Origin: Oculina patagonica
Taxonomy: Eukaryota
NCBI RefSeq assembly: GCF_052425735.1
Contig: NC_135770.1
Span: 6,262,001 to 6,326,000 of the forward strand
Length of the DNA stretch: 64,000 nucleotides
Reading direction: 5' to 3'
Made by a program: the position numbers and the translations under genes. Shown one piece after another: positions 10,908 to 52,069 of this stretch. How positions within the stretch are numbered: position 1 is the stretch's first letter; every line of letters begins with the position of its first letter. The notes under the pieces were generated by a model. The model was not told the DNA's origin, did not search any database, and was given only the letters and a program-made list of their open reading frames with translations.

Positions 10908-10956
10908 AAAATACGACGACGTTTCGACGTTGACATAACGTCATTATCAAGTCAAG
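10908..10956 (-). ncRNA. Minimal hammerhead-like motif (U3-A8 variant), Penelope-type terminal repeat remnant
   Basis: Minus strand reads gac TTGATAA t gacgtt-atgtc-aacgtc GAAAC GTC gtc. Confidence 0.4.
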
Positions 10957-26100: not shown

Positions 26101-29100
26101 CTTGCCTTGTCCTTAGGTATTATCAGTTTGACAAGGAGGTAGTGCGGGAACTTTTAGGTAAAAAGCTGACTGGACGTTTGAGGAAAGACTTGGATGACAT
26201 CAGTGAGAAGACAAATATTCCCCTCAAGAGTTGTCGCAGACAAGTGCGTTGTTAGAGTCAGATTTACTTAATGTTCAAAAGAGAGGGTTCAACAACAAGG
26301 GAGATGGGGGGGGGGGGGGTAAGCCAAGGCTCCTCCTCTAATTCTGGCACTGGTCATAATAATATTGTTGTTTAATGGTTGAAATGATTTGGATTCAAGC
26401 AAGCCCTGGCCAGGGTTGTTGTGGTGAGTTCTTGGGCAAGAGGTTTAAATTGGAAAGTGTAGGCCACTTTGGGAACTGGTAGAAAATCTTGCAAGGTCTT
26501 ACATGAATGACTCACTACCCTTCGAAAGAAAATAGAACAAACAACAGGAACAATCGATTCCGTACCTCCCAATACAAAAAAGAAATATAGCAACTGCTAC
26601 ACTTGAGGATCATTAGAATTACAAGCTTACGAAAGCTGCTGCACTACTACTGCGACCACTTTAGGCTCAATTGTCTTTAAGTTTACCATACAATTGTTTC
26701 AGCACTATTGAACTCCAGATCTAGATTGAGTAGTCTTGGTGTGTGCTCTGGCCAGAGTCATTGTGGTATGACCTTGGACACACCAGCAAATTTAATGCTG
26801 GGGCCAGGTAACCCTACAATGGACTAGCATAGTTACTTACCGGTATAATTTGCTACAGAAACCAGGATAAGCCCTGGTGCCTGTTGGTAACGTTGGCATC
26901 ATACAGACTTAACCTTTTGTTAGTAGTATGTTTCACCACTGCAACAAGTCTCCATACACGTGTAAATGGAAAAAATAAAGAGTGGATTAAATTGTTCCTG
27001 GGTACGTCAATTCTTTCCAAGACTTGCCCTTGATATACACCAAATTATCTATTGTCATCCGGCAGTTTTCTTAGCATTTGCTCTTTTATTTCAATCTACT
27101 GTTATTAGTTTGACAATGTGAAAAATGTGCTGAGAACAATAGAAGAGAATGAGGGAGGAGGGCTTGCTGACACTGTAAAGAAGCTCTTTCTGCTACCAGA
27201 TACTTTGGCAAGGTAATTTACATGTACATGTATGTTAAAAAGAATAAATGAAGGAGCTAGAGCAAAAACAACACATTGAATTTCGGCTAAATTTAAAATT
27301 GTCACAAACAGCTCCAGATTTCGCACGCAAGTTCGTTTACGTGTGCTAAACATTGATCTGTATTCAAATTTGCTGGATCTAGCTTCATTGCTTAGAAATT
27401 ACGTATGCAAAGAACAAAGGCGTTATGCAAAGCTTACGTTCTCCACAGTCAGCCAGCAGTATGAGTTTTTCGACACTTTGTGAGTAAATCTTTCCTTCTA
27501 GCATAATTTAACTGTCTGGGGAGGTTGAAAAATGTTTCAGAGCCATGCCACTAGTATAAAGTGGCAACACTACCAGCAAACATATTCAATTAATCAGTCT
27601 ATCACAACAATCAATCTTTTTTTCATTTATACCTCAAATTAGAGCTAACAGTAACAGATTAAAATAGTCTTGCCCAAAACAACAAAAATTAGCTAACCGC
27701 AAGCAGACTGCAGTGAAAGCTAGCCGCAAGCAAACTGGCGTGAAAGCTTACTGCACTAAAAACGTGATCTAAGTGTCAAGGCTGACTCTGATCCTAAACT
27801 TAACTTGAAACCTTAACCCTAATCCCTTGGGGTTAGGGTTAAGCTTTTTTTTTTGCGTTAGGGCTAGGCTTTTGCGTTAGTGCTAAGTCTGTAACCCTAA
27901 TCTGAAACTCTAACCCCGACCCTACGGCCTTCGGGTTACCTTTTGCATTAGGGCTAGGACTGTAACCCTAAAAAAATAGCTGACTTTGTTTTGAGGGACA
28001 AAAGGTTTCCTTTGTTTATCGTTTGTAAACAAACTTGCATGCGAAATCTGGAGCTGTTTGTGACAATTTTAAATTTAGCCGAAATTTGATGTGTTGTTTT
28101 TGCTCTAGCTCCTTCAAATATTAGTCATGTTTACTAAGTGTCTCTTTATATGAGCCTCATTGACCGGGCTGGCCCAGTTTTCGAGATCAAACTTCACTCC
28201 TATTTCCTTAGTAAAATTTTTGATGTGTTCAGTTCATATGAGAAGGCTGGCCAGCTCGGTTACCGAGATCTTGGTTGTAGAAACTGAGATCTTTGCAACC
28301 GGGATGGAAATTTTCCCATATGAACACTCCAGCCCAGTGCCTGTTATGAACCTTTTTTTTGAGAAAATAGCACCGCTTAAATTGCAGCTGGGCGGTCAAA
28401 AAGGGATAATTTTGCCTTGTATGTATTTCCACTTTAAAAGTATACAAATTTGCTTTATTAACTGAAGTTGCAAGTGTTGATAAGGCTACTATAGTCACAA
28501 ATGATGCAACTTTATGTGTTGCTATTTTGGTTTGTGTCTTGAAGTTCATCCCAGTCAACTGGGCTGAAATTTTTCATATGAACAGAGGACAAAACGCGTC
28601 CTGGTAACAAAGACAGCCAGTGGAAGAGTCTCTTAGTGGATATACCGGGATATTGATTCAGACTTACTGAGTCATAGAGATCGACATACATGTATACCCA
28701 ACATCAGTTGGTAAATATGGGTTAGTACATGTAGGTCTACAAACCAAGTTGCTAGTAGTGCTGGCAATCAATTAAGATTCATAATCCATGGGTCATTGAA
28801 AATAATCCTGTTGCCCTGACTGATCCAAATGAGACTGCAAAAAAAGTAATGTATATTCAGTGGCAGATCTAGGCGAGGGGCCTGTGGGGTAGGGAACTCC
28901 ACCTTAATTTTGGCCAAATGAAGGCCGTAAGACCAAGAAAAATTATTTTCAAGAGTGGTACCCTTTATTCCAGGGCCTGAATGATTGGGTTCCCAACTCA
29001 TCTGAAGGTCTGGAATTGCCACTGATATTGGCAGGCTAGTAAATCAGATAGTTCAAGGAATCAGATTGATGAGATCCTACTGGTTCACCTAACAATACTT

Positions 29101-32100
29101 GAAAAGGCTGGAACATAAAATTATAATAAAAAAATTGCATTGTTTTCTTTGACAGACAATACGCCTGTATATGTTTCATGGCTATCAATAAGATTGAAAC
29201 AGGAAAGAAAAGGTAAGTGTTAACACAACACTGTATATGTATTTGCTCTGAACAGGTTGCACCCAACAACACCCCTAATTTTATATTAATTTGGAAGCTT
29301 CAATTTTGGTAACGAGAGAAGAGATGTCAGTTGTTAACTTTGAAGTTCCACTGAGGAGTTCCATTATAATATTTGGTAACACAAAGACCAGCATATACAG
29401 TTTAAACATTGTTGTTGGCCTGGTTTTTGAGATAAAACTAGCTAGTGATTTTTCACAGAGAGAACAAGAGCGAATAAGATTGGATTTGCATGATTTTTCC
29501 AAGACATGCACAGATAAAGGTCTACTGACTACACATTTGTCAAGCTTCTTTTTAGTTTCCGTAAAATAGTAAAAATTAATTTTTATTTTAAACAAAACTT
29601 GAGCTATATGTTTGCATTTCTATTGGCACATTAATTAATATGTTTTTTTCTTCTTCACACTTTTCAAATTAGTGATAAATTGTGTGACTTTCCCCCTTTA
29701 TTTTGTTATCCGATAGGTTGTCCTACCTGACATTTGATGACCTTGTGTTCTGCGCAGAGCAGATGTTAGACCACTGGACTGTAGGATCAGTTGAAGGCTC
29801 TAGTGGTTAGTTGCATCTCTGCTGATCACCTTCAAATTTCTCCTTACAATCATCATTACTTTGTCTTACAGACAGGTGTTAAGAATAATTAATCAACTTA
29901 GGGTTGTGTGACTTGCATTTTCATGCTCAAACTTTGCAAATTGGTTGTTGAAATAAAAACGTGGGGTCCTGGTAATCGTTTAGGAGTAGGAGGACCTTAA
30001 ATATACCCTATAATTCCTTACAATATCAGCAAATTTAATTAAACTATCACCATATATTATTACGAGTATTGGCTAAGTTCACATTTTCGTTTATTATTTT
30101 ATAATTTCTGCAATGGAAATTTGTTCATATTCATTTTACAGAAAGAAGGTGATTGCTAGACTCAGAAAAAAAAAATGATAGGTCCCGGTAATCTATTTCT
30201 TAATACTTGATGACCAATAAATTTTAAAGTATATTAAAGAATAGAATTTGAACTTATGGCCTGTACATGTATTATGAAATGACATATAATTAAATATTTT
30301 CTTAAAATCTTTATTCTTTAATAACCTCTTTCAATGATTCTTCTCTTAACTGACAAGTTTAACTCTAACTAGTTATTAAATAATTATAACTGTTTGTTTT
30401 TAACTGTGTGCAATGTAACCTCTCTATAAAATGTACCCCTTCTATGACCTCTAATGATGTCTTTAACTAACCTATAACCTTTCACTAACCTTTCACAGCT
30501 TCTCGTCCACAATCCTTTCACAAGTTCATCATCTGTAAGCATCATTTTTTAAAGAGTAATAATTAACAATTCTTATTGACAAATTTTCTTTTCTGCTTAC
30601 TGCTTAAAAACACACCTTTTGGAATTCAGTTCCTACCAAAGTGACATAATTGTTAAACAGTTTAAAATTCCACAGAGGAACGGAAAAAGTATTCATGTCA
30701 CTTTACTGATAATTATTTTGTAAAACTCTCTGTACAAAATTTAAAAATATTACTGGGTATAAATCATGAATCATGCCAGTCTTACACAGCATTTCATCCT
30801 GGCAATGCTCAACAAGTTTACCAAAGGAAAAAGGTCTTTGAAAAGTCCACTGGCCTAGCCTCCTACGCAGACGTCCTTTGGGCTTGTCACGCATTTCTCC
30901 CCAACGCGTGACGAGCCCAAAGAACGTCTGCGTAGGAGGCTACCACTGGTCAGGACAAAATGCTGCATCAGAAGAAAGACAAGCCATGATTCAAAACCAG
31001 GCTCAACTTTTATTACCAGCATTTTATTGCTGACAAATACCAAAACTTTAATACAACAGTTAACTGTAAATTAAGATTATAAATTACTAGCTGCTTGAAG
31101 ACTTAAAAAAATAACCTGATCTTAAGACAACATGGGTCAAGGCCAGGTAAGGTAAAATCAGAACCTATTGGCTGAATGGCATCACCTATTGGCATGTCCT
31201 AGCTAAAAGTATTACCTTTTCCCCTGGATGAAATGCTATTTCATTAGAGGCACTGCAGGAGGTGTCGTCTACTGTAGAGGGCCTTGCAAGGGGCGGAGGT
31301 AGGGAGGAGGGGACCATGTTCCCAAGTTCCCCCCAAAAATGTCCCTCGTGTTCCTTTGCTCCCTTTAAGTATTTTGTTGATTTTTATCATCCGTGTTCCC
31401 TTATTTTCCTTTTGTTCCCAATTATTTTAATTAGTCGTTTTTCCTTGTTCCCTGAAACCCTGTGGGGAGCCTCACTGTCAATTCCAGGGAGCTATCTTTT
31501 AGGATGAAACTTGGTTGTTTGACGTCCAAAGTTCTTATTTTGTTTTGTTTTTTTAATTTGTTTTGTAGCTGCAGATGTAGGAGATACTGGTGCTGAATTT
31601 GACAGGGTTTTCCTTCAAGAGCTGAGAGATCTGAAGGTGTTTGTTAATGACAGAGAGATCGTGGAGGAACACAAAAGGTTTATATAGTTTTGTTATCTAA
31701 AATCACAGACATGAATTCTTATATATTGTGCTTCGCGATGTACTATAACCAATTTCCCAATTGGACAGGAGAGGCATAATAATGAGACACGCCTAAGTAA
31801 TTGAGAAATTAATTTCATTGACATATGTTAATTTTATGTTATATGTTTTTTCAGTTTGGTTTGCAGTGATATTGCCAAACGGTTTACCAAAAAGCTTGCA
31901 AAGTCTGTGGAATCAAATTTTAAGGTACAGTGAATCAAATGACAAAGTAGAATCTGCTATGTTATTGTACCTTAAGCACTGGTTTAACTGTCTCAAATCC
32001 TTTGCCCTCTTAAGCTGAAACCTGTTCCTCTTGGATTTGTTCACAGTAATTCCCTATGGGCTATCTTTGAATTCCAGCTTTCAGAAACAAATGTTTGTTT

Positions 32101-33773
32101 CCCTGATTTCTGAGGATTACTGAAATCAGGTTCATAAAATTGTCATGCAGTTTCTGAGCTTATGCATTACAGTAGCCCTGTTGTGTCAGTCAGGTACAAT
32201 AATTGATTATGATCATTGTAGTATGATTAAATGCAATGTCCATGGTAATTTATTGTAATTTTTCCTTTTATTTGGTTATCTCTAGAATCTATGCAGAGCT
32301 CTACTTAATATTGCTGCTGGTCTAATTCATAGTAAAGAAGTAAAGGATGTTTTGAGTGACTTTGTGGAAAAGGTATTCTTCAATCAGCATATTGTTTCAA
32401 GCTAACTAGTCTTATCTCCAGGCAGATCAGTTAACTGCCATTGTATATCGGGGTTTTTAGAATTGCATACTGTTATTCTCTAAAGTCATTTGCATATACT
32501 TTATTATGCATGCAAGTCATAAGTCCGGTGGAAATGGCTAATTAACCCCATAACTCTCTCCCATTGGTGTAGCGGTGCAATATTAACCGTTACCTTCAAG
32601 GCACGCCACCTTTTAGGTCTTTCAACAGTAAAACACCAAAATTACAGTTCAAATGTCGCGCCCCGCCCTTCCTCCCTTAGCGATCGGTGTTTGGTGCATC
32701 ATCTTCCAGCGGAGCGTTTATTTTGTGTTCAGGCGTACTTACCCTGTTTTTGTATCTTGTGCGTTTGCTGTTGACCACTTTGTTTCCCAAAGAAAAAAAC
32801 CTCCCGCTCCGCCGGTGACACTCTGTGTCACCTATGGCTTCACCGGAGTGTCGCTCTCCATATCGTAACCATATAACAATGACAGCAGAAATAATAATAA
32901 ACAACATTTACATTACATTCTTTGTATAAAAAAATAGAAAAAAAAAAGAAGAAGACCATTTTATTCGAAAACTTGCAGGAACTCCAATGTGAGTAAAACT
33001 CAGACATTAAAGGGAGTTCACGTGTTACCATCCTGACGTTATCTTTGTTTAATCCTTACTTAGATTGTTTTTTATTATTGTTTTGCAACAGTTCATCGAG
33101 CCCTGCAAGCAGCTTGACTGGGATTCCAAAGAGACGGAGATATTTCTTGGTTCTTTAGTGGACACATGTGGCAAATTGGATTCCTTGCACAGGTATGCTG
33201 GTACTATTACTTGGACAGGAATTTCTAGTTGTACTCATTTCTAATACGGCTCTCATTTGTTTCCTGCAAAATTATTGTTCTCACTTTAAAGGGACTGTGT
33301 CACGGATTTTAGCCAAATTTAGGCATGGGAAATGAGCATCGAATTCCACGAAAATTAATAGAAAAATAACCTCTTAAAACAGTGAAGGAACATTTCAATA
33401 ACACAGCAAATACAAAAGAAGGTACGGATGGCAAAAAGTGACGAAGATTGAAACGGATTGCGATATGGTTTTTGAAATGTTGTTGGGCAGAACAGTTTCA
33501 AAGTTAATCTCGTTTGTTTGTAACTTTAAATTAAAATGCCCGGGAGACAAATTTGATTGCAATGGAGCTATAGTTTTGTCATTTAGATCCAGAGAAGTAA
33601 TTTCTTTTCAAAAAGTAAGTTTCAAACTTTACTCAGCCGCGACACAGTTCCTTTAATCTTATGGCCGTTTTTTTTTTTAACTTCACAGAAGCAATCTAGA
33701 ACGCTTGATTCCTGTGTATTCGCGTTACATGACCGTCTCACAGAAGTGCATAGTGAGAATGTACCATGATTGA
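23105..33773 (+). CDS. FIBP: Acidic fibroblast growth factor intracellular-binding protein
   Basis: Exons 23105-23186, 25452-25650, 26117-26243, 27109-27212, 29156-29212, 29717-29805, (optional 30499-30534), 31569-31677, 31855-31924, 32286-32372, 33092-33192, 33689-33773. Phases are consistent. FIBP motifs: [52 protein letters not shown] and C-terminal MYHD*. Confidence 0.93.
23761..24045 (+). mobile_element. MITE, CCAATC-rich family, TA-flanked TIR tagag..gttttca / tgaaaaccgctcta
   Basis: Near-identical copy at 34732-35015 and a partial copy at 36688-36915. Confidence 0.8.
24138..25120. mobile_element. MITE with TA(A/G)CCTGAGTATCAGGC TIRs
   Basis: taacctgagtatcaggcc ... gcctgatactcaggcta. 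Confidence 0.7.
27249..28116. mobile_element. Non-autonomous TIR element (~90-bp TIRs) carrying telomere-like TAACCC/GGGTTA repeats
   Basis: tgaaggagctagagcaaaaacaacac.. / ..gtgttgtttttgctctagctccttca. Confidence 0.75.
30499..30534 (+). CDS. FIBP: Candidate in-frame alternative microexon of FIBP (12 codons, [12 protein letters not shown])
   Basis: cactaac branch point followed by ctttcacag acceptor, then 36 nt, then a gtaagc donor. Phase 1/1 matches the host intron and there is no stop codon. Confidence 0.55.
33287..33656. mobile_element. Kolobok-like non-autonomous transposon
   Basis: ttaaagggactgtgtcacgg ... ccgcgacacagttcctttaa. Confidence 0.65.
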
Positions 33774-33906
33774 GTGACAAAGTGAAAGGAATTCAATGAC
33801 TTTCTATCGTGAAGCCAAGAGAGAGGGCCTTGCCTAGCAACTTGTGTCGTGTTCTCACCTCTGCAAGGCTCTTCACTGTTAACACAGTGCCTCTCACGCC
33901 CGATGT

Positions 33907-36040: not shown

Positions 36041-36951
36041 GTTCAAACGGGCTGTACTATAATTCTGCATTTCCAGTGAAATAGCGCTAAGTTTAAAATT
36101 GCTGACTTAGGACCTCAAAAGGCTAGGAAAATTGCCGATCATAAAAACGCATTGATAACAAAATACCCAGCTTAGAAAGTAATCGCTATGTAATGTTAAA
36201 AAAATTAGTTATCGACAAACAACAAAAAAAGATTTTTCTTTTCAAAAGTTAAAAAACTAAAACTATTTTGTTGTCGATAACAAACGCGACATTCAGTTTA
36301 ATAACGACAAGCCTTGTGTTTTAGTCTGGGTGGCAGTCACCGACAAACACGCCACTTTCAGGATTATCTTAGGTGCCAGCGGTTTTGATTTTGTACAAAC
36401 AAACATGCGTAGTAAACACTAGTTACCAAACCTTCGCAGTAATCTCGCTGTTTGTTCAGATGTCGAATAACAGAATTTGACGTCGACAACACAATTCTGA
36501 GCACAACACTAGCAATCGGATATCTTAATTCAAAACAGCGAGACTGCATGCGTTCTATGCTAAAAAAAAGCATCTCAAAGGAGGATATGTAGTTTTACAA
36601 AAAAAAATTGTTTCCTAAAGTCTTTCTATGATTTCAAGTGTTCTCGATTTGAGGAATCTTATTAGGGAGAATCACGGTCGTGTAAAAGTGGTTTTCAATT
36701 GAGTGTCGTAAATTAAAACCAAAACCAAAGTAATCGTTCTGGCCAATCACAAGCCGAGACAGACAATCCAGTGAACCAATCAAAACTGGACGTATGTACA
36801 TGCTGCCCACGCGAAGCGCGGGAAAACGAGTGTGAGCAATCCGCAGTTGGTTTTGGTTTCACTTCTGATTGGTTAAAAAAATGACGCGAGATTTATTAAA
36901 ACCAATCACTAAGCGATATGGTTGTATATCAAACAAAATTACAGAGTAAAA

Positions 36952-39438
36952 TCACATGTTTCCTCCAAATAATTCTCCAAGTTCTTCTTGGTCGTAGGAG
37001 TCGTTTTTCGCAAGCTCAGTTTTTACCCAGTCGATAACAACACCAATCTTGAGACCCTCATTAGCAATGTACTTGAACCCTTTGGACTTGCGTTTGTCAT
37101 GGACAGAAAGAGCGCACTGATGGATGCCTATTAAGTTCCACATGTCGTCAAAACAGGGACCCCCGGATGACCCATCGTCGGTATCTGCAGTGTAGCGCAG
37201 GAACGGAAGATTATATTCACAATTGTTCTTCTTCAGCGATGAGAACAAACCTCGCTTTTTAGCAACCGAACGATGTGCTTTGTAGCGGTGATGCTCAATA
37301 AAGGATTTGTCGAAGAGCTTCAGGTAGCTATCGTCTGCGTGCAGGATTTGATTTTCGCGTAGAACCACCATTTGTTTTTTGTCCTGAGGGAACTGGATTA
37401 TGTTCACGTGCGTGCCTGGTTTTTCTGAGGTGATCACCCTTTCGCAGTAACCGATGTCACTTAGGCTGGAATTTCCGTCAATGGATCTCTCAGATACAGC
37501 GATCAAAGCGATGTCGAGAGTGTCATCTGGATGAGCTAGGAAGAACCTCTCTGGTTCAAGCTTGAAGATTTCCTCTGTCATATGGTACACGCTACTGCTA
37601 GGATTGACTCTTTCAAATATCACCTTGCCCCTCTTACAAGTCTTAAAAACGTGTAAGGCAGTGAGAAGGAGCCGTTTGGAGACCATGGTGCCCGTCCCTT
37701 GTCCGCCATTCTGCAGGTGGATTTTCCCGATGAACCTACTGGTTTTAAACCCGTCATACAGGAAGCGGTTGCTCTGCAGCTCTCCACTGAACAGGGCTTC
37801 TTCTTTCAGCACGTCTTGCTTACATTCCGTGATCCAATCCCACAGTCCACTGAAAATTCCCTCGTGTGCTTCGTGGAAACGATGTTCGCTCGATTTTTTG
37901 TGCCTAAAAGTAGAACAAGAAAGTTGTTTTTAAAGGGGAAGTATCAGAAACCTTAAAATAATGGCCCAGATTTTTTTTTATAAATTTAATACCACCCAGT
38001 GTACTAAAACTGTCGACGAGTGTCTCTGGCCATAGATGGAATGGGTCGAAATGAATTACAACTTAAAAAAGTCACTCCGACATTTTCAAGTGCTCGCATT
38101 CTTGTTTTCAACTGAGCCTGCGTAGCAGGCGCCGTAGTTTCGAGCGCGCGTATGGGAAACGCGAAAGGCGCGAGGGGGCCACGCGAGGATAAAAATCGCG
38201 CACTCTTTTAAACGCGCTAAAAAAAGGTACACAGACGCCTGCTACACGGGCTAGTTTTCAAAATGCGCTAGAAACAATCTCGCGCCTTTCAAATTCCCAA
38301 AAACTACTAAAAATAACTACACAGGCACGTTCTACGCAGGCTACCTTTTTCAAGAAATTCAAAATTTGAAAACAAGTTAAGGTAATTAAGAAGAAAAAAA
38401 TAATAGAAATCCTTGTGATACTTCCCTTTTAAAACGTATTACAGTCAAGCTCACCTCCCATAAAAGACACTTTACTTACAGTAGGGCCTCTTTATATGGA
38501 GAAACCCTAACCTCCACCTCCCTCATCCCCCCACCCCACCCCCCGCGCTTGTGCCGCGGTCCGACGGTTAATTAATTTTTCAGCTCAATGATGAACATGT
38601 TTGAACACGGCGTAACTTACCTTAAAATCGCATCAATTTGATCCTGATCAGTGTGAGCTCCTAGACAAAATGTATTTATGATGATGAAAATTAAAAAGGT
38701 TATATGGAGAAACTTAAGTTTCTTTAGAACGTCTTTGATTTAAAAATAGCAGGCATTGACCTTGAATTCGATGACGTCACCAGACCACGCCGAATCGCGT
38801 TACTTCCCAAAAAACAACTCATCACGCAACCGAACTTAATCACGCGAAGGTTAATATCCTTCCGCCGTTCTTACCTCGTATGAAACTTGATTTCAACTTA
38901 AACGCTGTGTACGTATTTACGTAAACCGTAAACTTTTGGGAAGGTAATTACTCGTTTTTGACCACATTTTGGACGAGAATGCAGCAATACGAGAAGGACA
39001 ATCGACTGCTCGACATAAATCATCTAAATATCTTTTTTGAACGCGAGATCGACAAAGTCGATTATGTTCTGCTTTTTGATGCTTTTTAATCGATTTGAGA
39101 TTTGAAAGATTGCTTTTAAAAGCAGCATTTTATATTCTTAAATTCCGAGATGCGCGACCCTTCCAAATTGATTTCTTGAATTGACGATCAACAGGATCAA
39201 AGACTTCAGTGTGTACATTCAAAACAACAAATGTCTTGTGTACGTATAGCCGTTTATATTAATAGTATAAATGGCGCTAAAACAGTCTAAAATGAAGCTT
39301 GAAGCGAAACTCAAGCCCTTGAAAACATGTCGTTAAACAACTTTTGATGTGTACAGAGATTACGTTTGTAGACTTTTGAATGAAATATGAATAAAAATTA
39401 CCTTGGTTTGCTTTTGAAGACTCGTTGGGATTCGGCAT
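36952..39438 (-). CDS. Trypsin-like (V8/Trypsin_2-type) serine protease of bacterial type, no signal peptide
   Basis: Exons (minus): 39438-39402 (MPNPNESSKANQ), 38660-38621, 37903-36952, with GT-AG introns in phases 1 and 2. Catalytic triad motifs: GTGTMVS..LLLTALHV (His), LDIALIAV (Asp), YTADTDDGSSGGPCF..W.LIGIH (Ser). Confidence 0.85.
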
Positions 39439-39552: not shown

Positions 39553-40590
39553 CTCTTATAACAATTATTTTATCAATGACCCGATTGTATGCGGGAATTT
39601 TTCGGGGAAGCCCCGATTTCGGGGGAAGCCCCAGTTTTCCAAGAATAGCCGTGATATAAACGGTCTGAAGTTCCCGTTGTTCTTGGCAATAATTTCCGGA
39701 AATGATTCTTTGTATGCGAAATGCAGTTTCTCCGTTAAAACAGTGCGTATCTTTGCAATTATTTTATAGTTTGCAATCTTTGTTCCTTTGTTACACCCTC
39801 GCGTGACTGACTAGTTTGATCACGTAACTATCTGGAACTCTTAAGTCCCCATTTCGAGGCGGAAGTGATATCGAATAATCTGAAACAACACCTGATCCAG
39901 CAATTGATCATAACAGAACTTCAAACTCAATTTGGTTCAGTATTTCCTATACCTAGGGAATCGGACTGTTTAATTTTCGTTCTCGGTATTTTAGTGGTAA
40001 TTTGTGCATTTGGTCGTTCTTGTTCAGTTTCTGCCTGTATTCTGTCGCAGGTCTGTATTAAATTTGCCAAAGTTGATTTGTGGGTTCGAAATGGCTAAAA
40101 AAGAAAAAAAAAACTGACTATAAGATTTGATTGGTAAGTCTCTTATTAATTTAAAACTCCTCTGGATCTTTCGGCTCTTGCTGGGATTTACTGTTTCACC
40201 GGTACTTGTTATTCGGGAAAGCCCCGGTTTCCAAGAATCCGCGCAAGATATGTCACTTGTATTTTCATTTTCTTTTCAAAGCGTGCACCTATAGAAGTCT
40301 CATTCTCGATCTAGAAACACCTTCCAGTCACAGTTGTTAACAGTCTTGGTAACGACATATGCGAATAAGCTTTCACTCTCGATAATTCATTTAATGTTAT
40401 TTCTTGTTTCAATGTTAGTTGACATCTAAACTCCTTCAGGTCTTCAATTAGTATGCATCTGTCATCGGCTTCCCCGCGGAACGGGGTTCCCAGACTGATG
40501 CATGTGGGAACTTTCCTAATTGTCTTTTTCAAAGTTTCCATATTTCCCCAACTGTGGGAGACGTTTCTCTAGAAAAGTCCCCAGTATTTG
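39553..40590 (-). promoter_or_regulatory. Protease promoter with TATA-like box and cluster of NF-kB-like and STAT/GAS-like sites
   Basis: GGGGAAGCCCC at 39604-39614 and 39622-39632, GGGAAAGCCCC at 40215-40225, GGGAACTTTCC at 40506-40516, GGGAATTTTT at 39593, TTCCAAGAA at 39637 and 40229, and TATAAGAG on the minus strand at 39560-39553. Confidence 0.55.
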
Positions 40591-42697: not shown

Positions 42698-45600
42698 TTA
42701 CAATGTAACCCCAATATGATAGTCATACTTAGCTCTGTTATTTAGCGAAAGATTTTGTTTTCTAAACTTTCTACGAATGCGTCCGGTTTCTACCGCACAT
42801 TTCAAACGCTTTTGATTGATCTTTGCTGTTTGTTGTACATGTCTTAAAGCCTTTGCAGGCTCCTTTTGACTGCTTCTTCTTGAGACCCCTGTAGCTATAG
42901 CTCTGGTTCGCGAAGGGCTAGGCTCTTCAGGGTCTAAATCCATAGGTATGCTTGAGACCTTCATCTGCACGGGCCTTACGGTCAAACAGATTCTTTTACT
43001 TTTTGGCCTGTCTTTTTGAGTTTCTGATGTTTTCTCGTCAATGGTTCGTTTTCTTTTAGTACTAAGCGTACTTGATTGTGAACTCGATGGCTTTAATTTC
43101 TCTTTAGCTTTGCATATTAACTCTTTGATGATATTAGCATCGCGCGGGAGAGGCCGTAACGGAAAGTACGCATGGGCAAATGGCTGCATCCGCAGCTGAT
43201 TGGTCTTAGTGACAGCCGCATCCTGCCAGTTGTTATGCGCAATCCTCGGCCCCAGGCTATCGCCGAATACCTCGTAGAGCTGCTGGTAGAGCTGTAGAGG
43301 ATTGGACGCGTGACTGGTTGAGCTTGACCGGGATCGGGACGAGGCCACGGGGGCTGGGCGCTGAATTACACTCGCCCCAGCCCACGGAGACAGATTGCTG
43401 CGCAGGACTGGGTGTGAGTTGTTGACTTGAAAGCCAAGAGTGGTCATGGGAACGCCATGTTGTTTCGACTTCAAAAGGCATCCAGCGGCTTGCTGTAGGG
43501 AAAAAAGAGGTGTACAGTTGATGATTAAACCTTTACCCCTAAAGCGAATGGTCTTTTTTTTATTCGTAAATTAAAAAATATATATAAACCTGATATCCGT
43601 ATATGATACACCATTTGAAAGTTCTTGATCAGAAAATTTCATAAAACACTTGAACAAATGAGAAGGAAGTTACAGTTTTGAAAGAAATGGGTTAAAACGT
43701 AAAAAAGAAAAAGATTTAAAAAAATTGTTTCTCTCCGTATATAGTAGGCATACCCCTAAACTACAGCTTATTGTGCAGATCTCAGTTTACTGGTTTATTT
43801 TAGTAATGTTGTATGTCACTTATGTGTCAGGCAAAAAAGTTGCAAAAGTTATATGGGTGGTTAATCATGTCACAAATAGGGGGGAGGTACAATTTTATGC
43901 TTTTAACATGCAGATCTTTTGAAGACAAGTGTGGTGACAAAAATTTAAATAAATTAGACAAATATTGACCAAGTTATGGCACACATGCCAACTCGCACTC
44001 TTAGGGGTAATAACCATGAAGCATTGTTTGGTACAATGTTGTTTGGGGCAAGCAGGGAAAAACGCGAGAGCATGGAACAGGCTATCTCCATTCTCGTCCC
44101 TAGGGCTGCTTGTTCCTCTTTGCTGGCTGAGCCTAGCAGGACAAAAACAACTTGAGTGGCTCTGGGGCCTGGGGGCACATGATTTGATTGGCTGGATTTT
44201 AACAAAAGAAACAGCCAGTGAATTGAGCCGTTTTAAAATCCCTTTGTTTGTATTGGAGTTTGAAATGGTTGATTTTGCTGGCTAGATTTTTGTTAACATC
44301 CAGCCAATCAAATCATTTGTCCCCATAGCCAGTCCTGTTTCTTGTGCACAGTCTCAGCCGGATTGAGAGGGACAAGCCACTCTGGGGACAAGAATGTGGC
44401 TCACTTCCAAAGACAGAAGGACAATACTGAAAACATAAACGATGAGAGCGATGTATTATGGATTGATTTTATCAAGCAATCAAGGTTTTAGGCTAAGAAA
44501 CCTCTAAGGTTTAAGACAGACAACGCGTCAGCCTGTTTTCTCTAGTTATATTCCTGTTAAACATTCACAATAATTATCAATGAAACCCATGCATCATACC
44601 AGAAGAGCTCCATAAACTTGGTAAGCTTCCTCTTGAAGAGGAGCATTTGATTGGCTGTTATCATCCAACACTTGCTGTAATTGGTTCCAATAGGTCCGCA
44701 GATGAGGCATCACGTATTGTTCTAAGGCCTGAAATGAACAAGGAAACAAATCATTTACACCTCCAATAACCTTTGTCTTTGTCAAGCTGTGCTATTTGCT
44801 AACCGAATAACCCAGGGCATGGCTTCAGTAGATGTCTGCCCTTTACTGAACAGTTGGCATTCTCGAAAGCAGACAGCTGTGTGACCACGTTTTAGTACCG
44901 TATTTTCTCGATTAAACGCGTTTATTTAAAACTTGCCCTGGTTGACTCAGCGTTTATTCGACTTCTGCAGTTTATGTGAGCCATGTGTTTACAAAGCAAT
45001 GGTTTTTATACTTCCAATAAATGTTTAAAGGGGTAATTTACATTTCCACCTTGGAGACAACGTTTTTTCGACTGAGACCTGGCGTTTAATCAAGAAAATA
45101 CGGTGGATGTAAGCGCTACCCTCCCCTCCTCCATCAAGCCCACAGTTTTGATACAATAATTTCACTTTGTCAAAAAAAGATACCCAGACTTAAACAGACA
45201 TTTAGTTTTCTTTTAGTAGTGGCCTATAACATGCAACAAGCTTTGCTTGGTAAACTGAGTGTATTTGTAATATTGTACCTCTGGTCCCAGTTCAGTCAGT
45301 CCTACAACAGCTCCATAATGCGAACAGAAAGGGCGACCATCATCTAACAACACTTCTTGTAGCGTCATGAGCAGCTGTTGTCTCAAGTAGTTGACCGGGT
45401 TGCTACATTTCCTAAAAAAATTCAAAAACCAATCGGTCAACTGATTGGTCAGAATTCCAACTATTGCTAAGCATTAATGTCATCATGCTGAAGTGAGAGT
45501 CCTCCTCACGGAATGTGCTCCCTCCTTCTCAAAAAAGGCTCGGATTTAATGATGCATTTCTTTATAAAGCGTCGCTTTTTCGATAAGTTCCATTCATGAA

Positions 45601-48600
45601 ATACTTTTTACGCAATAATCTTTTGCACTCGTAGCTCCCCATCTAATTTAGATTGAAGAGCTAATTTGAATAAGTGGGAGGAAATTCATTTGTCCAAAAT
45701 AAGCTTCCTTGGGAATGCACTTTCTAAGAATTGCTTGAATATAGTAGACTCGAAAACTGTAAAGGTTTGCCAAGGAGCAACAAGTTTTTATGAAGCTTTT
45801 TGCCACAGAAGGAGTTTGAATTTTGACATGGACCATAGTCTTGTTAAAGCTGCTAGCAGGCAGCGCATTTTACCCTCTGAACTTGACAATGTGAATTTGA
45901 TAAACAGAGCCATCCTGAGGATCTTACCTACTAATGCGAGCCAGAATGTATGCTGCCTCGTCCCTCAGTCGCCAGTGATCGTTTTGTGGATTTAACGAAG
46001 CAGCAAGAGACTCAAGCAGACAATACATGACAGCTGTAACAAGCTGGATTACCTGTTAAACAAACACTGAGTCATAAGTAAGAAAACGTGTACGTGATAA
46101 AAACTGATTGATCATTGAAGTTGAAAAAGTTAAATTAACCACCATGATAATGAATAGAAATTCTTCTAGCTGCTTAATGCTACATAAACCGGGATCATGA
46201 GCTCTGGTCCTGTTGGGCCACTAGCCTTGACAATAGGCTTACAGAGCGTACAGCAAAAACTTTTTTCCATTTTGTTTTGTTTTGTTTTGATTAAAGACAG
46301 TACAATGTACCGGTAAGTGCTTTTTTGTGTTAAGACCTGGAGAGCAAGACTGACTTCAATCCACTGCCAGTATGAAATAACTGTAAGTCACTGACTTAAT
46401 TCACATGCTATGTAGGAGGCATGCTTCTAGCTAGCCTTCTGAAAGAGGGTCAATATAAGAATGTAGGCCAAAATTGTCTGGGCAAGAGTCAAGTTTCTCA
46501 GACAATAACTGGCTTTTGACAAGAGAATAATGAATATTGTAAGTTTTGACCTACTCAATCTGAAGTCTAACCCAGTAATCTCCAGATCAACATGTCTCAC
46601 ACAAACGTAAAGGGGGGGGGGGGGGGGATGAACAAAAGCTGCAATGTTATTTACATTTAAATTACTTTTATAAGTACTGTAAATAACAAATTAAAAATAT
46701 GACTTGGGGTGCGTTTCTTTGGGAAAATCCAAAATTGGATCATTGATCGCAGATCACACGGATACTTTGCTCCCAAAGAAACGAAGAATCCGAAAACGGA
46801 TTTTTTGCCATGACAACCCCGTAAACACATTTCGCACAGAACATAAAATATCAGCACAAATTTATTTTTCGTCGAATGCATCCTAGCTAAAATAATTTAA
46901 GCATACAAAATCTTTACAAAAACCACACTTCGAAGTAGATCTCTTTAGCGTTAAGCACAATGTGGCAAGAGAAAGCATCTGAGAGCGAAAATGATTGCGA
47001 AAGGATCAGTGCAAATTTCACTAGTGACAATTTCAAAAGGATACAACTTCCGTAGGCACACAGTGGCTGTTCTACAAAATCTGTATCCCGTTTAAAATGA
47101 TACTACATACCTATCTGAAGCTACCGTTTCCTTTTATCGTGAAATATTTTTGTATTTTGATCGAAATAACCGCCTTAAACTTTCTGTATGGCAGTGAGCG
47201 AACCTGTATTTTCACAGCAAAGACCGCTGGGCCAAAGTACTTTTTTCGAATCCTTTCCCAAAGAAACGCACGGATCATGAATCCTAAAAATCCGGATTCA
47301 GATATGATCCGATGTATCCACTCGAAGTGTGGATTCTTCAGATCATTGATCCAAGATTAATCCATTTTCGGATATAGGTAAAGAAACGCAAAATCCGTTT
47401 TTGGATCAAGAATCCGGATTTGGATTTTTCCCAAAGAAACGCACCCTTGGTAATATTTAATTTTAATTGCTTACATATGGTTCAAGGAACAGTGACAGAT
47501 TATCGATTAGGGATCTGACCATACTCAGAAGCTTGCTTAGCTGAGTCAAGTCGTGGCTGTAAGTCTTAACCTGAAATAAAGTAGACAAAACATGATTTCT
47601 GGAAACAATAAATTAAATACACATCACTATCATAATAGATGCCTTCCAAGGGGGGTAGCTGTGTCACAATGTTGCATGTTTCTGAGCTGCCATGCCACCT
47701 AGCCAACAGCTGTAAATGTTGCTGTCATTTTTTCCCACTATTGTGTTGCTGTCCCATTGTGTCGCTGTCCGACTGAGTGCCATAATGACGTCGCTTGTTG
47801 TTGTTAAAATGTTCCTGTGTCGTCAGTATTCAGGGTCATGTTGCTTGTCGCTTTTACCCCTTGGAAGGCCTCATGATAATAAAGTTAAATTGCGATACAA
47901 AATATAAACACTCTGCTTAAAATACAACCACACGATGGTTTTCTGTAACAAACAAGAATGGTACAAAATGCACCATGCTAGTGGGCAAGCAACATGTATT
48001 CACTGGGACATCCAAAATGAAGAAATGTCAAGCTTGACTAGTTGAAATTGTGTCAGTTTGAAGGCTGTCACATTCTGACGTCACCCAGCATGGTAGATTT
48101 TGTACCCTGTGACTGATTGTTGCCAAAAGCACACTGTCAATAAATTAGCCATGTTCAAAACGAGCAGGGGACTGGGTACGAATATTCAATATCGTTTTCA
48201 CTGAAAAACTGGGCCCGTCATCTGAAAGAGCATCCAAAAATTAGTAACTCAGCCAAATTTGAGAGTTATTGGTTTAAATGCAAAGGCATGGAACTCTTTT
48301 AAAAATCGTTAAAATAAGAGAGCTTTGTATGGCTGGATGGACAGCTGTCCCTCCAATCCATACTAAGCTCTCTTATTTTAGCAATTTCTAAAAGTGAACC
48401 ATACCAGGGGTCCTATGCGTTTATACCAATAACTCTCAAATTTGGTTGAGTTACTAATTTTTGGATGCTCTTTCAGATGACGGGCCCAGTTTTCCAGTCT
48501 AATCGATATTAAAAACTTCATACCCAGTCCCCTGCTCGTTTTGAACATGGCCAATTGGCACTGCTACATTTGGAAAATACAGTTTTCTCCACTTACCCCT

Positions 48601-51600
48601 GATGCAATAAAGTTCACAAAATAGGCCAGTAGAGAAGAAATCTTTGGATTGGTTTTCAGATCCCTTAGAGCCACCTGTGAAAAAGAGGAAGCCGAGCAAT
48701 TATTCTTACATTTTCTCTTAGGCCCCTTCTCTTTTAAGGCACCACTTTTAAAAGGTCTTGAAAAGACTCCCCCCTCCTCCTTCACTTCAGGATGTAAACA
48801 TGTCAAATATCATTCTTCTTGCGCATGGGTATGTCACTGTGGTAAAGCTACCATGCCATTTAAAAGTACAATCATGTAGGTTACCATAGATGGTGATGAT
48901 TAATTAACAAAATAAATATCTCTTTGCAGTTTATAACTGGAAAATTCCTACCTTGCTGCATTGCTCCTCATCACCTAAAACAGCTTTTGTTATCTGTTCA
49001 TAGTAACTCAAACAGGCCTACAATGAGTAGAAACAATTGATGGTTTAAATACAACAACAACAACAACAATAAAATATGTCAGAGAGCAAAATATATTATA
49101 TAGCTGGCTTGGGATGTTACATGCAAGAAAATAGCTCATCTAGAAGTGTGATCATCCAGTTGAGGGTAGCCCTAAAATAGACTGTTGTTATGATTGCAAA
49201 GTTCTGACTAATTCAATGACTTGAGTGAAAGTCATCATTAGAGTCTGCTCCAGTTGACCCAACAACATTCCTTTTCAGTAGTACCCTCAGCACAACAATC
49301 ACACTTGACAATAAAACTACCAAATGCCTGCTCCTTGGTTCAAGCCACTCCTTATAACCAAAGAAAACAAAACTATTACACCAACTCACCTCTGAGAGGG
49401 TATGCTGCACAACTCCAGCTTCACTGACATTGTTAACTCGACCTAGTTTCACAGAAAAGAGAATAAAAACACAACAAAATATATAAGGCGAAAATGAAAT
49501 TAAATGTACACAATTCACCAGCTCATGGTGTTTGCCAGCCAGCTTCTCTAATCTCAGAAATTCATGGCATTAGGCAGAATTTTTCTTCATCTGGTAAAGA
49601 ACTTAGTCATCAGTATCAACTTACCACCATTTTGCTGAGCATGACCTCCTGCAGCCGGGGAACCCTCAGTCGGAAGCCAATAAGCTGCAGAAATAACAGA
49701 GGGTTGGGGTTTTAGACACTGTCAGTTGTTTTTGTGCTCTTATGAGGACCTGTTAAGGGTAAATTCCGACAGGCCATATGGCTCTGAAACGGCGACATGA
49801 AGGAGCTGAAATGACGACGAACGACGAGATGCTCCCGTGAAATAACGACTGCGACAAAGAAAAAAGCAAAATCGACAGCGACATTGGCGCTTTTTAAAGT
49901 GGCTTGTACTGATGTAGGCAAAATAGCCTGACCTTGTAAAGACCATTCTCGTGCATTGAACGACTGCAATCTTACTGCAATCTTAGTTCATTTTTAGGCT
50001 GCTTAAGTTAAGTAACTACATAATGATCCATCATTCTGAAAATAATTCACTCCATGTTCTCTTTGTACCTGCTCAGAATAAAGGAAAACAGGTCTAAGCT
50101 ACTTCAGTTTTTCAAAATTTTCTGGGGGAGCATGCCCCCCGACCCCCCTAGGAAGGTGTCTCCTTCATCTGTGCCAACAGATCTAATTGAGATATCCAAG
50201 AATAGGGAATATTTGGGCGACAGAACTACGAGAACGCATTATTTTAGGTTATGCACTCCGGACTCAACCATTTCCGACAGCGACATGCGGACCTTTCGAA
50301 ATTGCGACATCAAAGGGTTTAAAATTCAGACGGGGGACATGAAGACCCCCCTAACAGGGCCTCTTTTATATGGTGCATGTGATCTATACAGCAACCCACT
50401 GATCCAGTCTTGAATTTTAATCATTCACAGTCCAAAAAACAATGACTTGGTCCACAGCCTCAAACATAAACCTGATTTGGACTGAAACTTGTTAAGACTT
50501 AAGTGTAAGTCAACCACTCAACTCCTCTAGAGCTCAGTTCTGATTAACTACTTGGATCTTTATACTGCATTTTCTTACTTGCAAAAGGAAAGGAGGGATT
50601 GAAAGTGCACTGTAGATACATGTAAGCCTTTCCTTGCTCCAATTATTATAATGGAAGGGGGAATTTCCCTAAGACCTTCCTGTCTTGGATTTTTTTTTAG
50701 GTAAAATGAGGGAGACTGGATTCCCCCAAGCCCCTCCACTGAATTGTTCTTTCAAAATCAATTATTAACATATCACCTCATGAATTCTCGACCTCAGAGC
50801 GGTTTGTCCCTCTGGGGACACATGATTTGATTGGCTGGATTTAAACTATTTTAAAATCCCTTTGTTTGCATTTTATTTCTTGAAAATTCCCTTTGTCATT
50901 TGAGAGTTTAAAACAGTTAATTTGATTAGCGTGATTTGAAACTTCCTTTGTCAAAATCTAGCCAATCAAATCATGGTCCCCAGAGGCACTGTTTCTTGTG
51001 CACAGGCTCTGCCGGCTAAGAGGGACAAGCAGCTCTGGGGACAAGAATGCTTATCACCTTTGACTGTTCTCTGTCCAGGATCAGTGGGTATTGCCACATT
51101 CATTGCCAGCTCTCGCAGACCAATCTCCTTGTCTTCAACATAGAATATATCACCATCTTTAGTAGTGGTGCTGCGAAACAACATGTCCTCCAATGACCCA
51201 TAACCATAAATGGGCTGCGAAAAATTCAAAACAAACAATGAAGTTGTTTCCAGTGACAAAAAATACATTGTACATGTAACATGACAAAGCCATAAAGGGG
51301 TTCATTGAAGAGAAATGGGGAAGAGAGAGGAGCTTATTCAATTCATAAGCCAGTATAGGGCAAACTAATAAAGACTGTTGTAAGAGACCTTTTAATGTTT
51401 TATGTTTTCCATAAAACATCTCCACAAAGAAGGAACCAAAACGTTGTGTGGTGGGCAAAATAACTTTAAAAAGTACAAATGAAGTTGTAACTGGAAACTA
51501 ATGTTTTAAATCCTGACAGTGGCATTGGAAAGTGGAGAGGGGTGAAAGAGTTAGAGGGGTAGAGTGGAGCTTTCTAGAGAAAGGGGAGAGGGGGGAGGGG

Positions 51601-52069
51601 CTTAAAACAAAACAATCTGGACAGTGATCTCCCCCCCCCCCCCTCCCTTCACCAACTGTCCCGGTTTGGGTACGTACGACTATACAAAATTATGACGACC
51701 TCATCATTATACCAAAAAATAAAAAGACATGAAGCTTTGGTATCACCTCTGTGCTACTCGTTTCTAACGCTTTGTTGAAATCTTCACATGTGAGCCGCCT
51801 TCTCTTGGAATGCTTCATGAACTGCGATGCACTCTGTGTAAATCATTTCAAATAATCAAACGGAAGCTACATCAAATAACAAAAGTTGACCAGTAATCCG
51901 ATAGAATTAGGGCGCCTAACTGTACCTGAAGCGTCTCGCGAAGCCTGTAAGTTACATCTTCCGCAAGAGAACTTGCCAGGTCGTCCGTCAAACTTTGCAC
52001 GCCGAAAATTTCGGCGTACAATTTTACCGACTTGGGGGAGACTATTGCAAATTTGGAGTCGTCAGCCAT
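42698..52069 (-). CDS. TAF6L: TAF6-like RNA polymerase II p300/CBP-associated factor-associated factor 65 kDa subunit 6L (SAGA histone-fold subunit)
   Basis: Exons (minus): 52069-51926, 51833-51747, 51214-51058, 49684-49625, 49442-49390, 49017-48952, 48674-48597, 47570-47475, 46052-45928, 45411-45279, 44728-44600, 43492-42698. Motifs LAEDVTYRLRE..QFMKHSKRRRLT, GVK..SHDL.QL..LL, LAASLNP.NDHW.LRD.AA and RPFCSHYGAVVGL are TAF6L-type rather than TAF6-type. Confidence 0.92.
43526..44010. mobile_element. piggyBac-like non-autonomous element (TTAA..CCC termini); second copy at 58309-58724
   Basis: The two copies share ~400 bp, from cccctaa.gcgaatggtcttt to gcactcttaggggt. Confidence 0.65.
46706..47446. 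mobile_element. MITE (Harbinger-like GGGTGCGTTTC TIR)
   Basis: gggtgcgtttctttgggaaaatcc ... ggatttttcccaaagaaacgcaccc. Confidence 0.75.
48148..48551. mobile_element. Palindromic MITE (~130-bp arms)
   Basis: gccatgttcaaaacgagcagggactgggta ... tacccagtcccctgctcgttttgaacatggc. Confidence 0.8.

Follow-up and report, generated by a model that had tools for sequence, protein, structure and literature searches.

An intron-bearing Trypsin_2 protease gene of corals related to bacterial NucA-trypsin conflict proteins

Gene model, neighbours and selection

The 64,000-nucleotide stretch analysed here, called the window throughout, comes from the coral Oculina patagonica (NCBI RefSeq assembly GCF_052425735.1, contig NC_135770.1, positions 6,262,001 to 6,326,000 of the forward strand); coordinates are positions within it unless another locus is named. 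On its minus strand it carries a three-exon gene, at 36952-39438, which is a genuine intron-bearing animal gene encoding a Trypsin_2 protease of 342 amino acids (aa). The protease belongs to a family known from bacterial conflict proteins, and the gene probably descends from a bacterial one. The gene model consists of the following features:

39402..39438, minus strand: exon 1 (37 nt); start codon ATG at 39438-39436, 12 codons plus 1 nt, donor GTAATT; in agreement with the N-terminus of the NCBI model P0001
38661..39401, minus strand: intron 1, GT...AG; the equivalent interval of locus L088 is skipped by the transcript-like ortholog contig L095
38621..38660, minus strand: exon 2 (40 nt); encodes the conserved ...DAILR motif; donor GTAAGT
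37904..38620, minus strand: intron 2, GT...AG; pyrimidine-rich acceptor
36952..37903, minus strand: exon 3 (952 nt); N-terminal helix, entire Trypsin_2 domain, C-terminal helix and LGELF tail; stop codon TGA at 36954-36952
36892..36897, minus strand: polyadenylation signal AATAAA, 55-60 nt past the stop codon

The exons (37 + 40 + 952 nt, stop codon included) join into an in-frame coding sequence of 1029 nt that yields the 342-aa product. The open reading frame (ORF) listed at 36952-37812 on the minus strand is part of a longer stop-free frame that reaches the AG acceptor at 37904/37903, and both introns have GT-AG borders, the acceptor of intron 2 being rich in pyrimidines. A preliminary description of the window, made from the sequence alone, had proposed a spliced protein of about 342 aa with two tiny 5' exons and the catalytic domain on a single exon. 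The coding sequence bears this out, as does the NCBI Oculina patagonica model "uncharacterized protein y4fB-like", which has 342 aa, an identical architecture and an exon 3 that is 98% identical. No second copy of the gene was found within the 64-kb window.

Evidence on splicing was provided by an ortholog. The 1316-nt Joint Genome Institute (JGI) contig L095 contains a 5' untranslated region (UTR), a full ORF of 338 aa and a 3' UTR, and it has no introns. It aligns to the window at the three exons, and to the genomic ortholog locus L088 (90% identity) in three blocks, 6941-7059, 7826-7868 and 10019-10997. L095 has the form of a spliced mRNA of the ortholog, a retrocopy being a remote alternative; in either case this transcript-like sequence maps across both of the introns that had been predicted. 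The Logan contigs L090-L094 were considered as further transcripts and rejected. They are genomic, with the last exon of FIBP downstream, and what had been called their N-terminus is intron read-through.

The gene lies between two host genes:

25361..33794, plus strand: FIBP gene; its 3' end faces the protease gene, tail to tail; PF05427 on four exons
42701..52090, minus strand: TAF6/TAF6L-family gene with its 3' end upstream of the protease promoter; TAF (PF02969) and TAF6_C (PF07571) on its exons

These Pfam matches agree with the neighbours named earlier, FIBP and TAF6L, the latter at the level of the family, that is TAF6 or TAF6L. Adjacency to FIBP is conserved in other anthozoans. On a 1-Mb contig, locus L088 encodes an ortholog of 70% identity and keeps the gene order of the window from TAF6 through the protease gene to FIBP. 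At L001, on a 626-kb contig from a more distant clade (44% identity), the protease gene is again tail to tail with FIBP, and no TAF6 exons were found within 10 kb upstream. In the stony coral locus L089 (1690-10750) the protease gene is inverted relative to FIBP, so that the two are on the same strand, head to tail, and still adjacent. The gene is thus present beside FIBP in all three loci, L088, L089 and L001.

Stony corals share the two small 5' exons, and the clade of L001 and L002 has a different intron. This phase-1 intron falls in the Gly codon after the catalytic Ser (GSS|G; approximately 10891-11440 in L001 and 5597-6000 in L002). Splicing it out gives a complete catalytic domain in both species, and the stony-coral orthologs lack it. 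Among six stony-coral sequences the pairwise ratio of nonsynonymous to synonymous substitution rates (dN/dS) is 0.14-0.21, with dS up to 1.5, and the ORF is intact in every ortholog. The gene is under purifying selection. Its coding GC content (0.467) is like that of the neighbouring host exons.

The protease domain and its bacterial relatives

The protein matches Pfam Trypsin_2 (PF13365; clan PA) with 56.8 bits against a cut-off of 27.6 (E 5.6e-15). Residue numbers refer to the full-length protein and equal the exon-3 residue number plus 26. The principal sites of the domain are:

37651..37653, minus strand: codon of catalytic His110 (exon-3 His84), verified
37513..37515, minus strand: codon of catalytic Asp156 (exon-3 Asp130), verified
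37165..37167, minus strand: codon of catalytic Ser272 (exon-3 Ser246), the second S of GSSG, verified
37180..37182, minus strand: codon of Thr267 (exon-3 T241), five residues before the catalytic Ser; equivalent of chymotrypsin 190 in the S1 pocket; conserved in at least 90% of the rows of a 76-sequence family alignment
37120..37122, minus strand: codon of His287 (exon-3 H261) in the GIH motif; equivalent of chymotrypsin 213 in the S1 pocket; invariant in the same alignment
37219..37332, minus strand: anthozoan-specific insertion of about 38 residues just before the S1-pocket strand (model residues 191-228, about 217-254 in the full-length protein); low model confidence; lacking in bacterial relatives

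The triad His110/Asp156/Ser272 (exon-3 H84/D130/S246), in the order His-Asp-Ser and with a GxSG motif, is invariant among the 76 sequences. Thr267 and His287 align with the S1-pocket Thr and His of staphylococcal SplB. Because Thr/Ser190 and His213 are known to shape the S1 pocket in V8, SGPE, Spl and 3C enzymes, this pocket suggests cleavage after Glu, Gln or Asp. An intact triad and S1-pocket residues at the Thr before GSSG and the His of GIH had both been read from the window before, and both readings hold in the family alignment. The lack of a signal peptide, of the S1A disulfide pattern and of an IVGG start is borne out too. By inspection the N-terminus is hydrophilic, hence no signal peptide, and the six Cys (exon-3 positions 27, 89, 153, 228, 250 and 263) are away from the S1A disulfide positions.

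An AlphaFold2 model (mean predicted local distance difference test score 80, predicted template modelling score 0.76) has a long N-terminal helix, two beta-barrels and C-terminal helices. Every Foldseek match to it is a chymotrypsin-fold protease, with probability 1.0 for SplA, trypsin, exfoliative toxin A and FAM111A. The first half of the insertion is conserved (F-I/V-E-H-H-R-Y), and its second half is basic in stony corals, resembling a nuclear localisation signal (NLS), and acidic in the L001/L002 clade.

Two protease groups were rejected as a home for the protein: S1A trypsins, since signal peptide, IVGG activation start and the C42-C58/C168-C182/C191-C220 disulfides are all lacking, and HtrA/DegP, since there is no PDZ domain and the sequence matches in the PDB are only marginal (E 0.5-1 in a single-sequence search, in which SplB reached E 8e-4). 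The nearest solved relatives by sequence profile are the staphylococcal S1B enzymes SplB, SplE, V8/GluV8 and the exfoliative toxins (SplB 3e-10 to 2e-14), which have the same Thr190/His213-type S1 pocket, tied to a P1 preference of the Glu/Gln/Asp type. Those enzymes however are secreted, with signal peptides and N-terminus-dependent activation, whereas the coral protein has no signal peptide, a hydrophilic N-terminus, a long helical N-terminal extension of about 80 residues and a C-terminal helix.

For the wider family, an exhaustive phmmer search was made against 1.84 billion representative proteins. It gave 1999 matches at E<=1e-3, of which three, all anthozoan, reached E<=1e-30. The rest of the top 150 are proteins of 168-1707 aa, and bacterial nuclease fusions score 75-94 bits. 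Ten sampled matches included Trypsin_2 joined to Endonuclease I or to Endonuclease_NS, and fusions with S8 or with the effector-associated domains EAD1 or EAD5. A Pfam survey of a 71-sequence subset of the best non-anthozoan matches found a fused nuclease in 33 (Endonuclease_NS in 20, Endonuclease_1 in 13). A word-indexed search gave a similar picture: below the corals, identity falls to 24-34%, to bacterial-looking proteins that include one from Acidobacteria with an EAD1 domain. Scanning bacterial and archaeal genomes, one per species, confirmed at least 575 stretches (575 of 600 candidates); the 80 loci retained from these represent at least 12 phyla (Pseudomonadota, Actinomycetota, Cyanobacteriota, Chloroflexota, Planctomycetota, Acidobacteriota, Myxococcota, Bacillota, Deinococcota and Verrucomicrobiota among them).

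Searches by structure agree with those by sequence. The top Swiss-Prot predicted structure is y4fB of Sinorhizobium fredii (E 3.5e-16, 23% identity). In AFDB the top 23 clusters bear generic or nuclease-type names, and the first entries that we take to be recognisably animal begin at rank 24. The ten shape-neighbour families in ESM Atlas consist entirely of bacterial Trypsin_2 fusions. Hundreds of bacterial species, from about a dozen phyla, carry the family, mostly as one module within a multidomain conflict protein, in line with the earlier description of a prokaryote-type Trypsin_2 protease whose relatives are fused to non-specific endonucleases and effector-associated domains. The architecture of these relatives agrees with "System 3, NucA-trypsin", a conflict system found disproportionately often in multicellular bacteria (Kaur et al. 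2020, eLife 9:e52696, PMC7159879; see also PMC8195603).

By sequence and by predicted structure, NucA-trypsin and y4fB (P55440, Sinorhizobium fredii NGR234) are the closest known system. Identity to bacterial loci and named proteins is 24-33%, and up to 47% over matched stretches, with scores of 73-94 bits. Common to both sides are an N-terminal motif, VNIIQxP...LRENQ, ANEG, the Thr/His pocket residues and the lack of a signal peptide. The motif preceding the bacterial domain, ERIxG..D....FL..G...A..VGRI, is present in the coral protein in a diverged but alignable form, EALFSGELQSNRFLYDGFKTSRFIGKI, and ANEG as IANEG; E34, N281, E282 and G283 are invariant or almost so in the family alignment. 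Unlike its bacterial relatives, the coral protein stands alone. A Pfam scan detected only Trypsin_2 and Trypsin, with no Endonuclease_NS (NucA), Endonuclease I, S8, GDSL or EAD partner; no nuclease or adaptor gene of an operon adjoins the gene, its neighbours being FIBP and the TAF6-family gene; and NCBIfam gave no match. It also differs in having introns, an animal promoter and the insertion of about 38 residues before the S1-pocket strand, and in lacking a bacterial loop of about 20 residues between the LHH and ANEG motifs.

Homology to anti-phage protease effectors is detectable as well. PADLOC returned RT-Protease_XI (E 2e-8), the class XI system of reverse transcriptase (RT) and protease, and LmuA (E 3e-6), the protease-type effector of Lamassu. 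Both matches are weak and concern the protease module only, and the coral gene has no RT or Lamassu partner; they support the theme of Trypsin_2 modules as defence effectors.

The best bacterial identity by tblastn (33%) was to L007, in a metagenome-assembled genome of Roseibium sp. (OZ246005.1). Roseibium is a marine alphaproteobacterial genus often associated with corals and dinoflagellates. L007 lies at the end of a long branch and does not group as the sister of the anthozoan clade, and it therefore does not identify a donor.

The anthozoan family and an upstream kB/GAS-like element

In the word-indexed search 17 proteins from corals had 55-98% identity; those with a species name belong to Oculina patagonica, Desmophyllum pertusum and Stylophora pistillata. 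Orthologs in other stony corals are 55-86% identical. Two deeper anthozoan clades, at 28-44% identity, also carry the gene. One of them is defined by P0023 and P0024 (44% identity), which are two of the three phmmer matches at E<=1e-30, and a profile search with the deeper clade (A2) returned four proteins. Among the best matches the only close eukaryotic relatives found were anthozoan, and no animal protein outside Anthozoa was recognised.

A first tree was built from the protease domains of 246 proteins, comprising the anthozoan ones, top representatives and ORFs from bacterial loci. In it the 13 stony-coral rows form one clade (SH-aLRT, the Shimodaira-Hasegawa-like approximate likelihood ratio test, 99), which is joined by L001/L002 (98); this group in turn joins a second anthozoan group, P0027/P0202/P0093 (98). 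In a second, unrooted tree of 77 rows (LG+C20 with posterior mean site frequencies) all 15 anthozoan rows fall on one side of a branch with support 99/99. These trees show that the anthozoan family arose once and underwent one early duplication.

The group-B proteins and the loci L002-L005 derive from metagenomes of deep-sea corals (Vohsen et al. 2020, PMC7068898). In that study BioSamples SAMN12856788-811 cover 12 specimens of Leiopathes glaberrima, 8 of Callogorgia delta and 4 of Paramuricea. The positive samples (88, 89, 94, 96 and 97) are all five among the first twelve BioSample numbers, an order consistent with the black coral Leiopathes as host. Groups A and B are paralogs, since both are present in a single sample, SAMN12856789.

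Derived features shared by the anthozoan proteins are the insertion before the strand of the pocket Thr and the loss of the bacterial loop between LHH and ANEG. A C-terminal motif, L-G-x-P/L-F-E/G, is likewise common to both paralog groups (codons near 36955-36990 for the window protein; L001/L002; P0027, P0202 and P0093), and is truncated in the pocilloporid orthologs P0016 and P0017. This motif could be a docking or autoprocessing site.

Upstream of the gene we found a cluster of sites resembling NF-kB binding sites (kB-like) and gamma-activated sequences (GAS-like):

39555..39560, minus strand: TATA-like box TATAAG, about 120 nt upstream of the ATG
39601..39645, minus strand: two kB-like sites in tandem (GGGGCTTCCC both times), each bordered or overlapped by GAS-like TTCNNNGAA; 163-207 nt before the ATG
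40216..40237, minus strand: third copy of the 24-nt kB/GAS-like module, about 0.8 kb upstream of the ATG

The kB consensus GGGRNWYYCC has seven distinct sites in the 64 kb, three of which lie at 39605-40225. Each of these three overlaps or abuts a GAS-like site, thus forming three copies of a 24-nt module. Read along the gene strand, the order is GAS-like, kB-like, kB-like (39645-39601), TATAAG (39560-39555) and the ATG at 39438. We defined a composite as a kB-like site within 8 nt of a GAS-like site, both being consensus matches, and used a first-order Markov model as the null. The window has three copies of the composite; all of them fall in the 0.8 kb preceding the ATG, and the remainder of the 64 kb has none.

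The comparison covered the five loci in which sufficient upstream sequence was available: the window, L088, L089, L001 and L002. The composite is present exactly once in each of the other four (L088 6844-6868; L089 8066-8080; L001 9292-9305; L002 3627-3640), on the sense side and 0.85-3 kb upstream of the main coding exon. The null predicts 0.01-0.08 composites per locus. In L088 it lies approximately 75-95 nt upstream of the mapped 5' end of L095, with a TATAAA in between, about 50 nt upstream of that end. The L002 element, TTCGGGGAAGTCCC, is one base off the window's TTCGGGGAAGCCCC, though identity between the proteins is no more than 44%. GAS-like sites by themselves show no enrichment across the window (33 observed versus 27.5 expected); only their composite with kB-like sites is informative. 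As a set of consensus matches, the composite is a phylogenetic footprint of a candidate proximal kB/STAT-type element, and the protease is probably NF-kB-inducible.

Origin, possible role and rival explanations

The relatives among bacterial conflict proteins, the selection acting on the gene beside the same neighbour, and the kB/STAT-like element together point to a gene that was probably acquired from bacteria long ago and put to new use in coral innate immunity. The explanation that we favour, with a probability of roughly 0.6 taken whole, is that the gene encodes a functional intracellular Trypsin_2 endopeptidase, derived from an ancient transfer of a NucA-trypsin module from a bacterium to an anthozoan, and likely acting as an innate-immune or cell-death effector. 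Of its parts, we consider it quite likely that a single bacterium-to-anthozoan transfer preceded the split between stony corals and the L001/L002 clade, followed by intron gain and duplication. The immune role is more tentative, and we put it somewhat below even odds.

According to this explanation, a hexacorallian anthozoan ancestor would have taken up the bacterial protease module alone, leaving behind the nuclease and adaptor partners. The gene would then have gained spliceosomal introns and a lineage-specific insertion beside the S1 pocket, lost the bacterial loop and duplicated once. The tandem kB-like/GAS-like sites of the proximal promoter would make its transcription responsive to NF-kB and STAT-type signalling, and the enzyme, cytosolic or nuclear, would cut host or invader proteins by limited proteolysis at P1 Glu, Gln or Asp. 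Its activity would probably be gated by the insertion, by self-association of the N-terminal helix or by both, as in FAM111A, for which helix-mediated self-association has been described (PMC10920703). The most likely role would be that of an innate-immune or cell-death effector.

A bolder version, which strikes us as doubtful in its full extent, holds that an early hexacorallian captured a bacterial abortive-infection or conflict protease, stripped of its nuclease and put under NF-kB/STAT-responsive control. It would act as an inducible executioner or antiviral restriction protease, with the insertion as an activation switch (for example by autocleavage). If this were true, the protease would be, in function, the cnidarian equivalent of FAM111A or of effectors of the caspase type, and another instance in which a prokaryotic defence module was turned directly into part of animal innate immunity.

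Several points weigh against the favoured explanation. In the 77-row tree the anthozoan branch is separated by about 1.1 substitutions per site from a bacterial backbone without resolution. As the trees are unrooted and the anthozoans form one long branch, nesting within bacteria, and with it the direction of transfer, is a probable reading and no direct outcome of the trees. The trees cover anthozoan and bacterial-type rows, leaving out FAM111, a mollusc family and an amphioxus Death-domain fusion. Most of the relatives are metagenomic proteins, whose bacterial origin follows from their domain architecture and from the separate scan of bacterial genomes, and the host of group B and L002-L005 is uncertain to the extent that it depends on sample order. 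The kB/GAS-like element consists of consensus matches. FAM111A, which has the same fold, favours large hydrophobic P1 residues, so the pocket residues are no guarantee of Glu/Gln specificity. Moreover, the top PDB match by Foldseek is the FAM111A protease domain (8s9k, E 3e-11, 14-17% identity; template modelling score, TM, 0.54-0.57 by query and 0.63-0.70 by target), and by language-model features a chordate FAM111A-like cluster is the joint best look-alike.

These FAM111 resemblances bear on two rival explanations. FAM111A and FAM111B are vertebrate replication-fork and antiviral restriction proteases, and removal of DNA-protein crosslinks has been proposed for FAM111A. The first rival accepts the same bacterial origin and assigns the coral protein to housekeeping or genome-maintenance proteolysis, such as DNA-protein crosslink removal or protein quality control. 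Besides the structural resemblance to FAM111A, it can draw on the basic, NLS-like second half of the insertion in stony corals, on the steady purifying selection (dN/dS 0.14-0.21), unlike the rapid evolution often seen in immune effectors, and on the single copy in the 64-kb window, where no lineage-specific expansion is seen. The basic character is not conserved however, the insertion being acidic in the L001/L002 clade, and the Pfam scan found no PCNA-interaction, UBL (ubiquitin-like) or DNA-binding domain. Together with the kB/GAS-like composite conserved at five loci and with bacterial relatives that are conflict-system effectors, this makes the housekeeping explanation unlikely in our estimate, although it is the main rival with regard to function.

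The second rival is vertical inheritance. It proposes a patchily retained ancient eukaryotic or metazoan Trypsin_2 family that was also the source of the FAM111, mollusc and amphioxus proteases, the bacterial similarity being due to slow evolution or to an older transfer at the base of the animals. It is compatible with the unrooted tree and gains from the FAM111A protease domain being the best PDB structural match (TM 0.54-0.70, N-terminal helix included), from the ranks of FAM111A/FAM111B in Swiss-Prot structures (2-4, behind y4fB), and from the tie for first place by language-model features; a Death-domain fusion among the AFDB matches, which we take to be from amphioxus, also counts for it.

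The sequence distances disfavour this explanation. Identity to FAM111 is 13-18%, versus 21-33% to bacterial proteins. Single-sequence phmmer gave no match to FAM111A at E<=1, whereas bacterial nuclease fusions score 75-94 bits. A mixed family profile gave SplB 2.4e-14 versus FAM111A 3.3e-6, and a profile of anthozoan sequences alone gave SplB 3.3e-10, exfoliative toxin A 1.3e-8 and FAM111A 1.5e-3, in agreement with a protein that is not part of a widespread metazoan family. The N-terminal motif E-x-x-x-G/S...F-L...V/I-G-K/R-I and the ANEG motif are common to the coral and bacterial clade, no animal protein outside Anthozoa was recognised among the best matches, and vertical inheritance needs loss in almost all eukaryotes. 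It still stands as the main rival with regard to origin, because the trees hold no FAM111, mollusc or amphioxus rows, but we judge it distinctly improbable.

Membership of FAM111 itself was rejected, despite the structural match, on sequence (E 1.5e-3, 13-18% identity) and on architecture, there being no Pfam match to FAM111_N, UBL or a PCNA-interacting region and only about 80 residues ahead of the protease domain. What the coral protein shares with FAM111A/B is an intracellular Trypsin_2-type protease with, in the best solved-structure match, a helix preceding the barrels. It may work like FAM111A, as a self-association-dependent, tightly gated protease of cell-intrinsic defence, though a different pocket chemistry is expected and it is not an ortholog.

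Contamination of the assembly by bacteria, or a decaying pseudogene, for which bacterial-like best matches taken alone might speak, can be dismissed as having next to no probability, given the two GT-AG introns, host genes on both sides in a contiguous 64-kb window, the presence of this locus in an O. patagonica scaffold of 38 Mb as well as in contigs of Mb scale from other corals, the intact ORF in every ortholog with dN/dS about 0.15, and the host-like GC.

The gene has been annotated automatically in public coral genomes, and we found no paper mentioning it, its accessions (LOC111340559/OS493_012797) or "y4fB-like" proteins in cnidarians. The coral protein is a new eukaryotic form of a known bacterial protease family, being stand-alone and intron-bearing, with an insertion of its own and an animal immune-type promoter. 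Components of animal immunity that trace to bacterial conflict systems include cGAS-STING, gasdermins, TIR and Death-like adaptors and viperins. The NucA-trypsin protease module is an added candidate for that list, in reef-building animals, and an unusually clean case of probable bacterial origin in view of the independent intron gains, synteny, purifying selection and ortholog transcript evidence. The deeply conserved kB/GAS-like element makes the immune hypothesis directly testable. Should the immune role be true, the protease would offer a marker and a handle for coral immune and stress responses and an independent parallel to defence proteases of the FAM111A type; should it be false, it would be a well-documented orphan protease family specific to anthozoans.

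Other features of the window were recorded as well. A single-exon rhodopsin-family G protein-coupled receptor of 394 aa (7tm_1, E 5e-41) is encoded at 18336-19520 on the plus strand, and biotin-dependent carboxylase exons (Biotin_carb_N, CPSase_L_D2), probably of pyruvate carboxylase, at 54458-57427 on the plus strand. Two near-duplicate exons on the minus strand, 1650-2087 and 8255-8680, have F5/8 type C (discoidin) domains, with a Pfam match on the second exon only, which suggests tandem duplication of a lectin-like gene. At about 2650-2930 a short tandem repeat, reading LHFTS/LYFT in one frame, flanks a run of N (191 in total). Finally, a tandem repeat at 59667-59994 on the plus strand translates as (T/I)RLERNE many times, and is probably a satellite or minisatellite rather than coding sequence.

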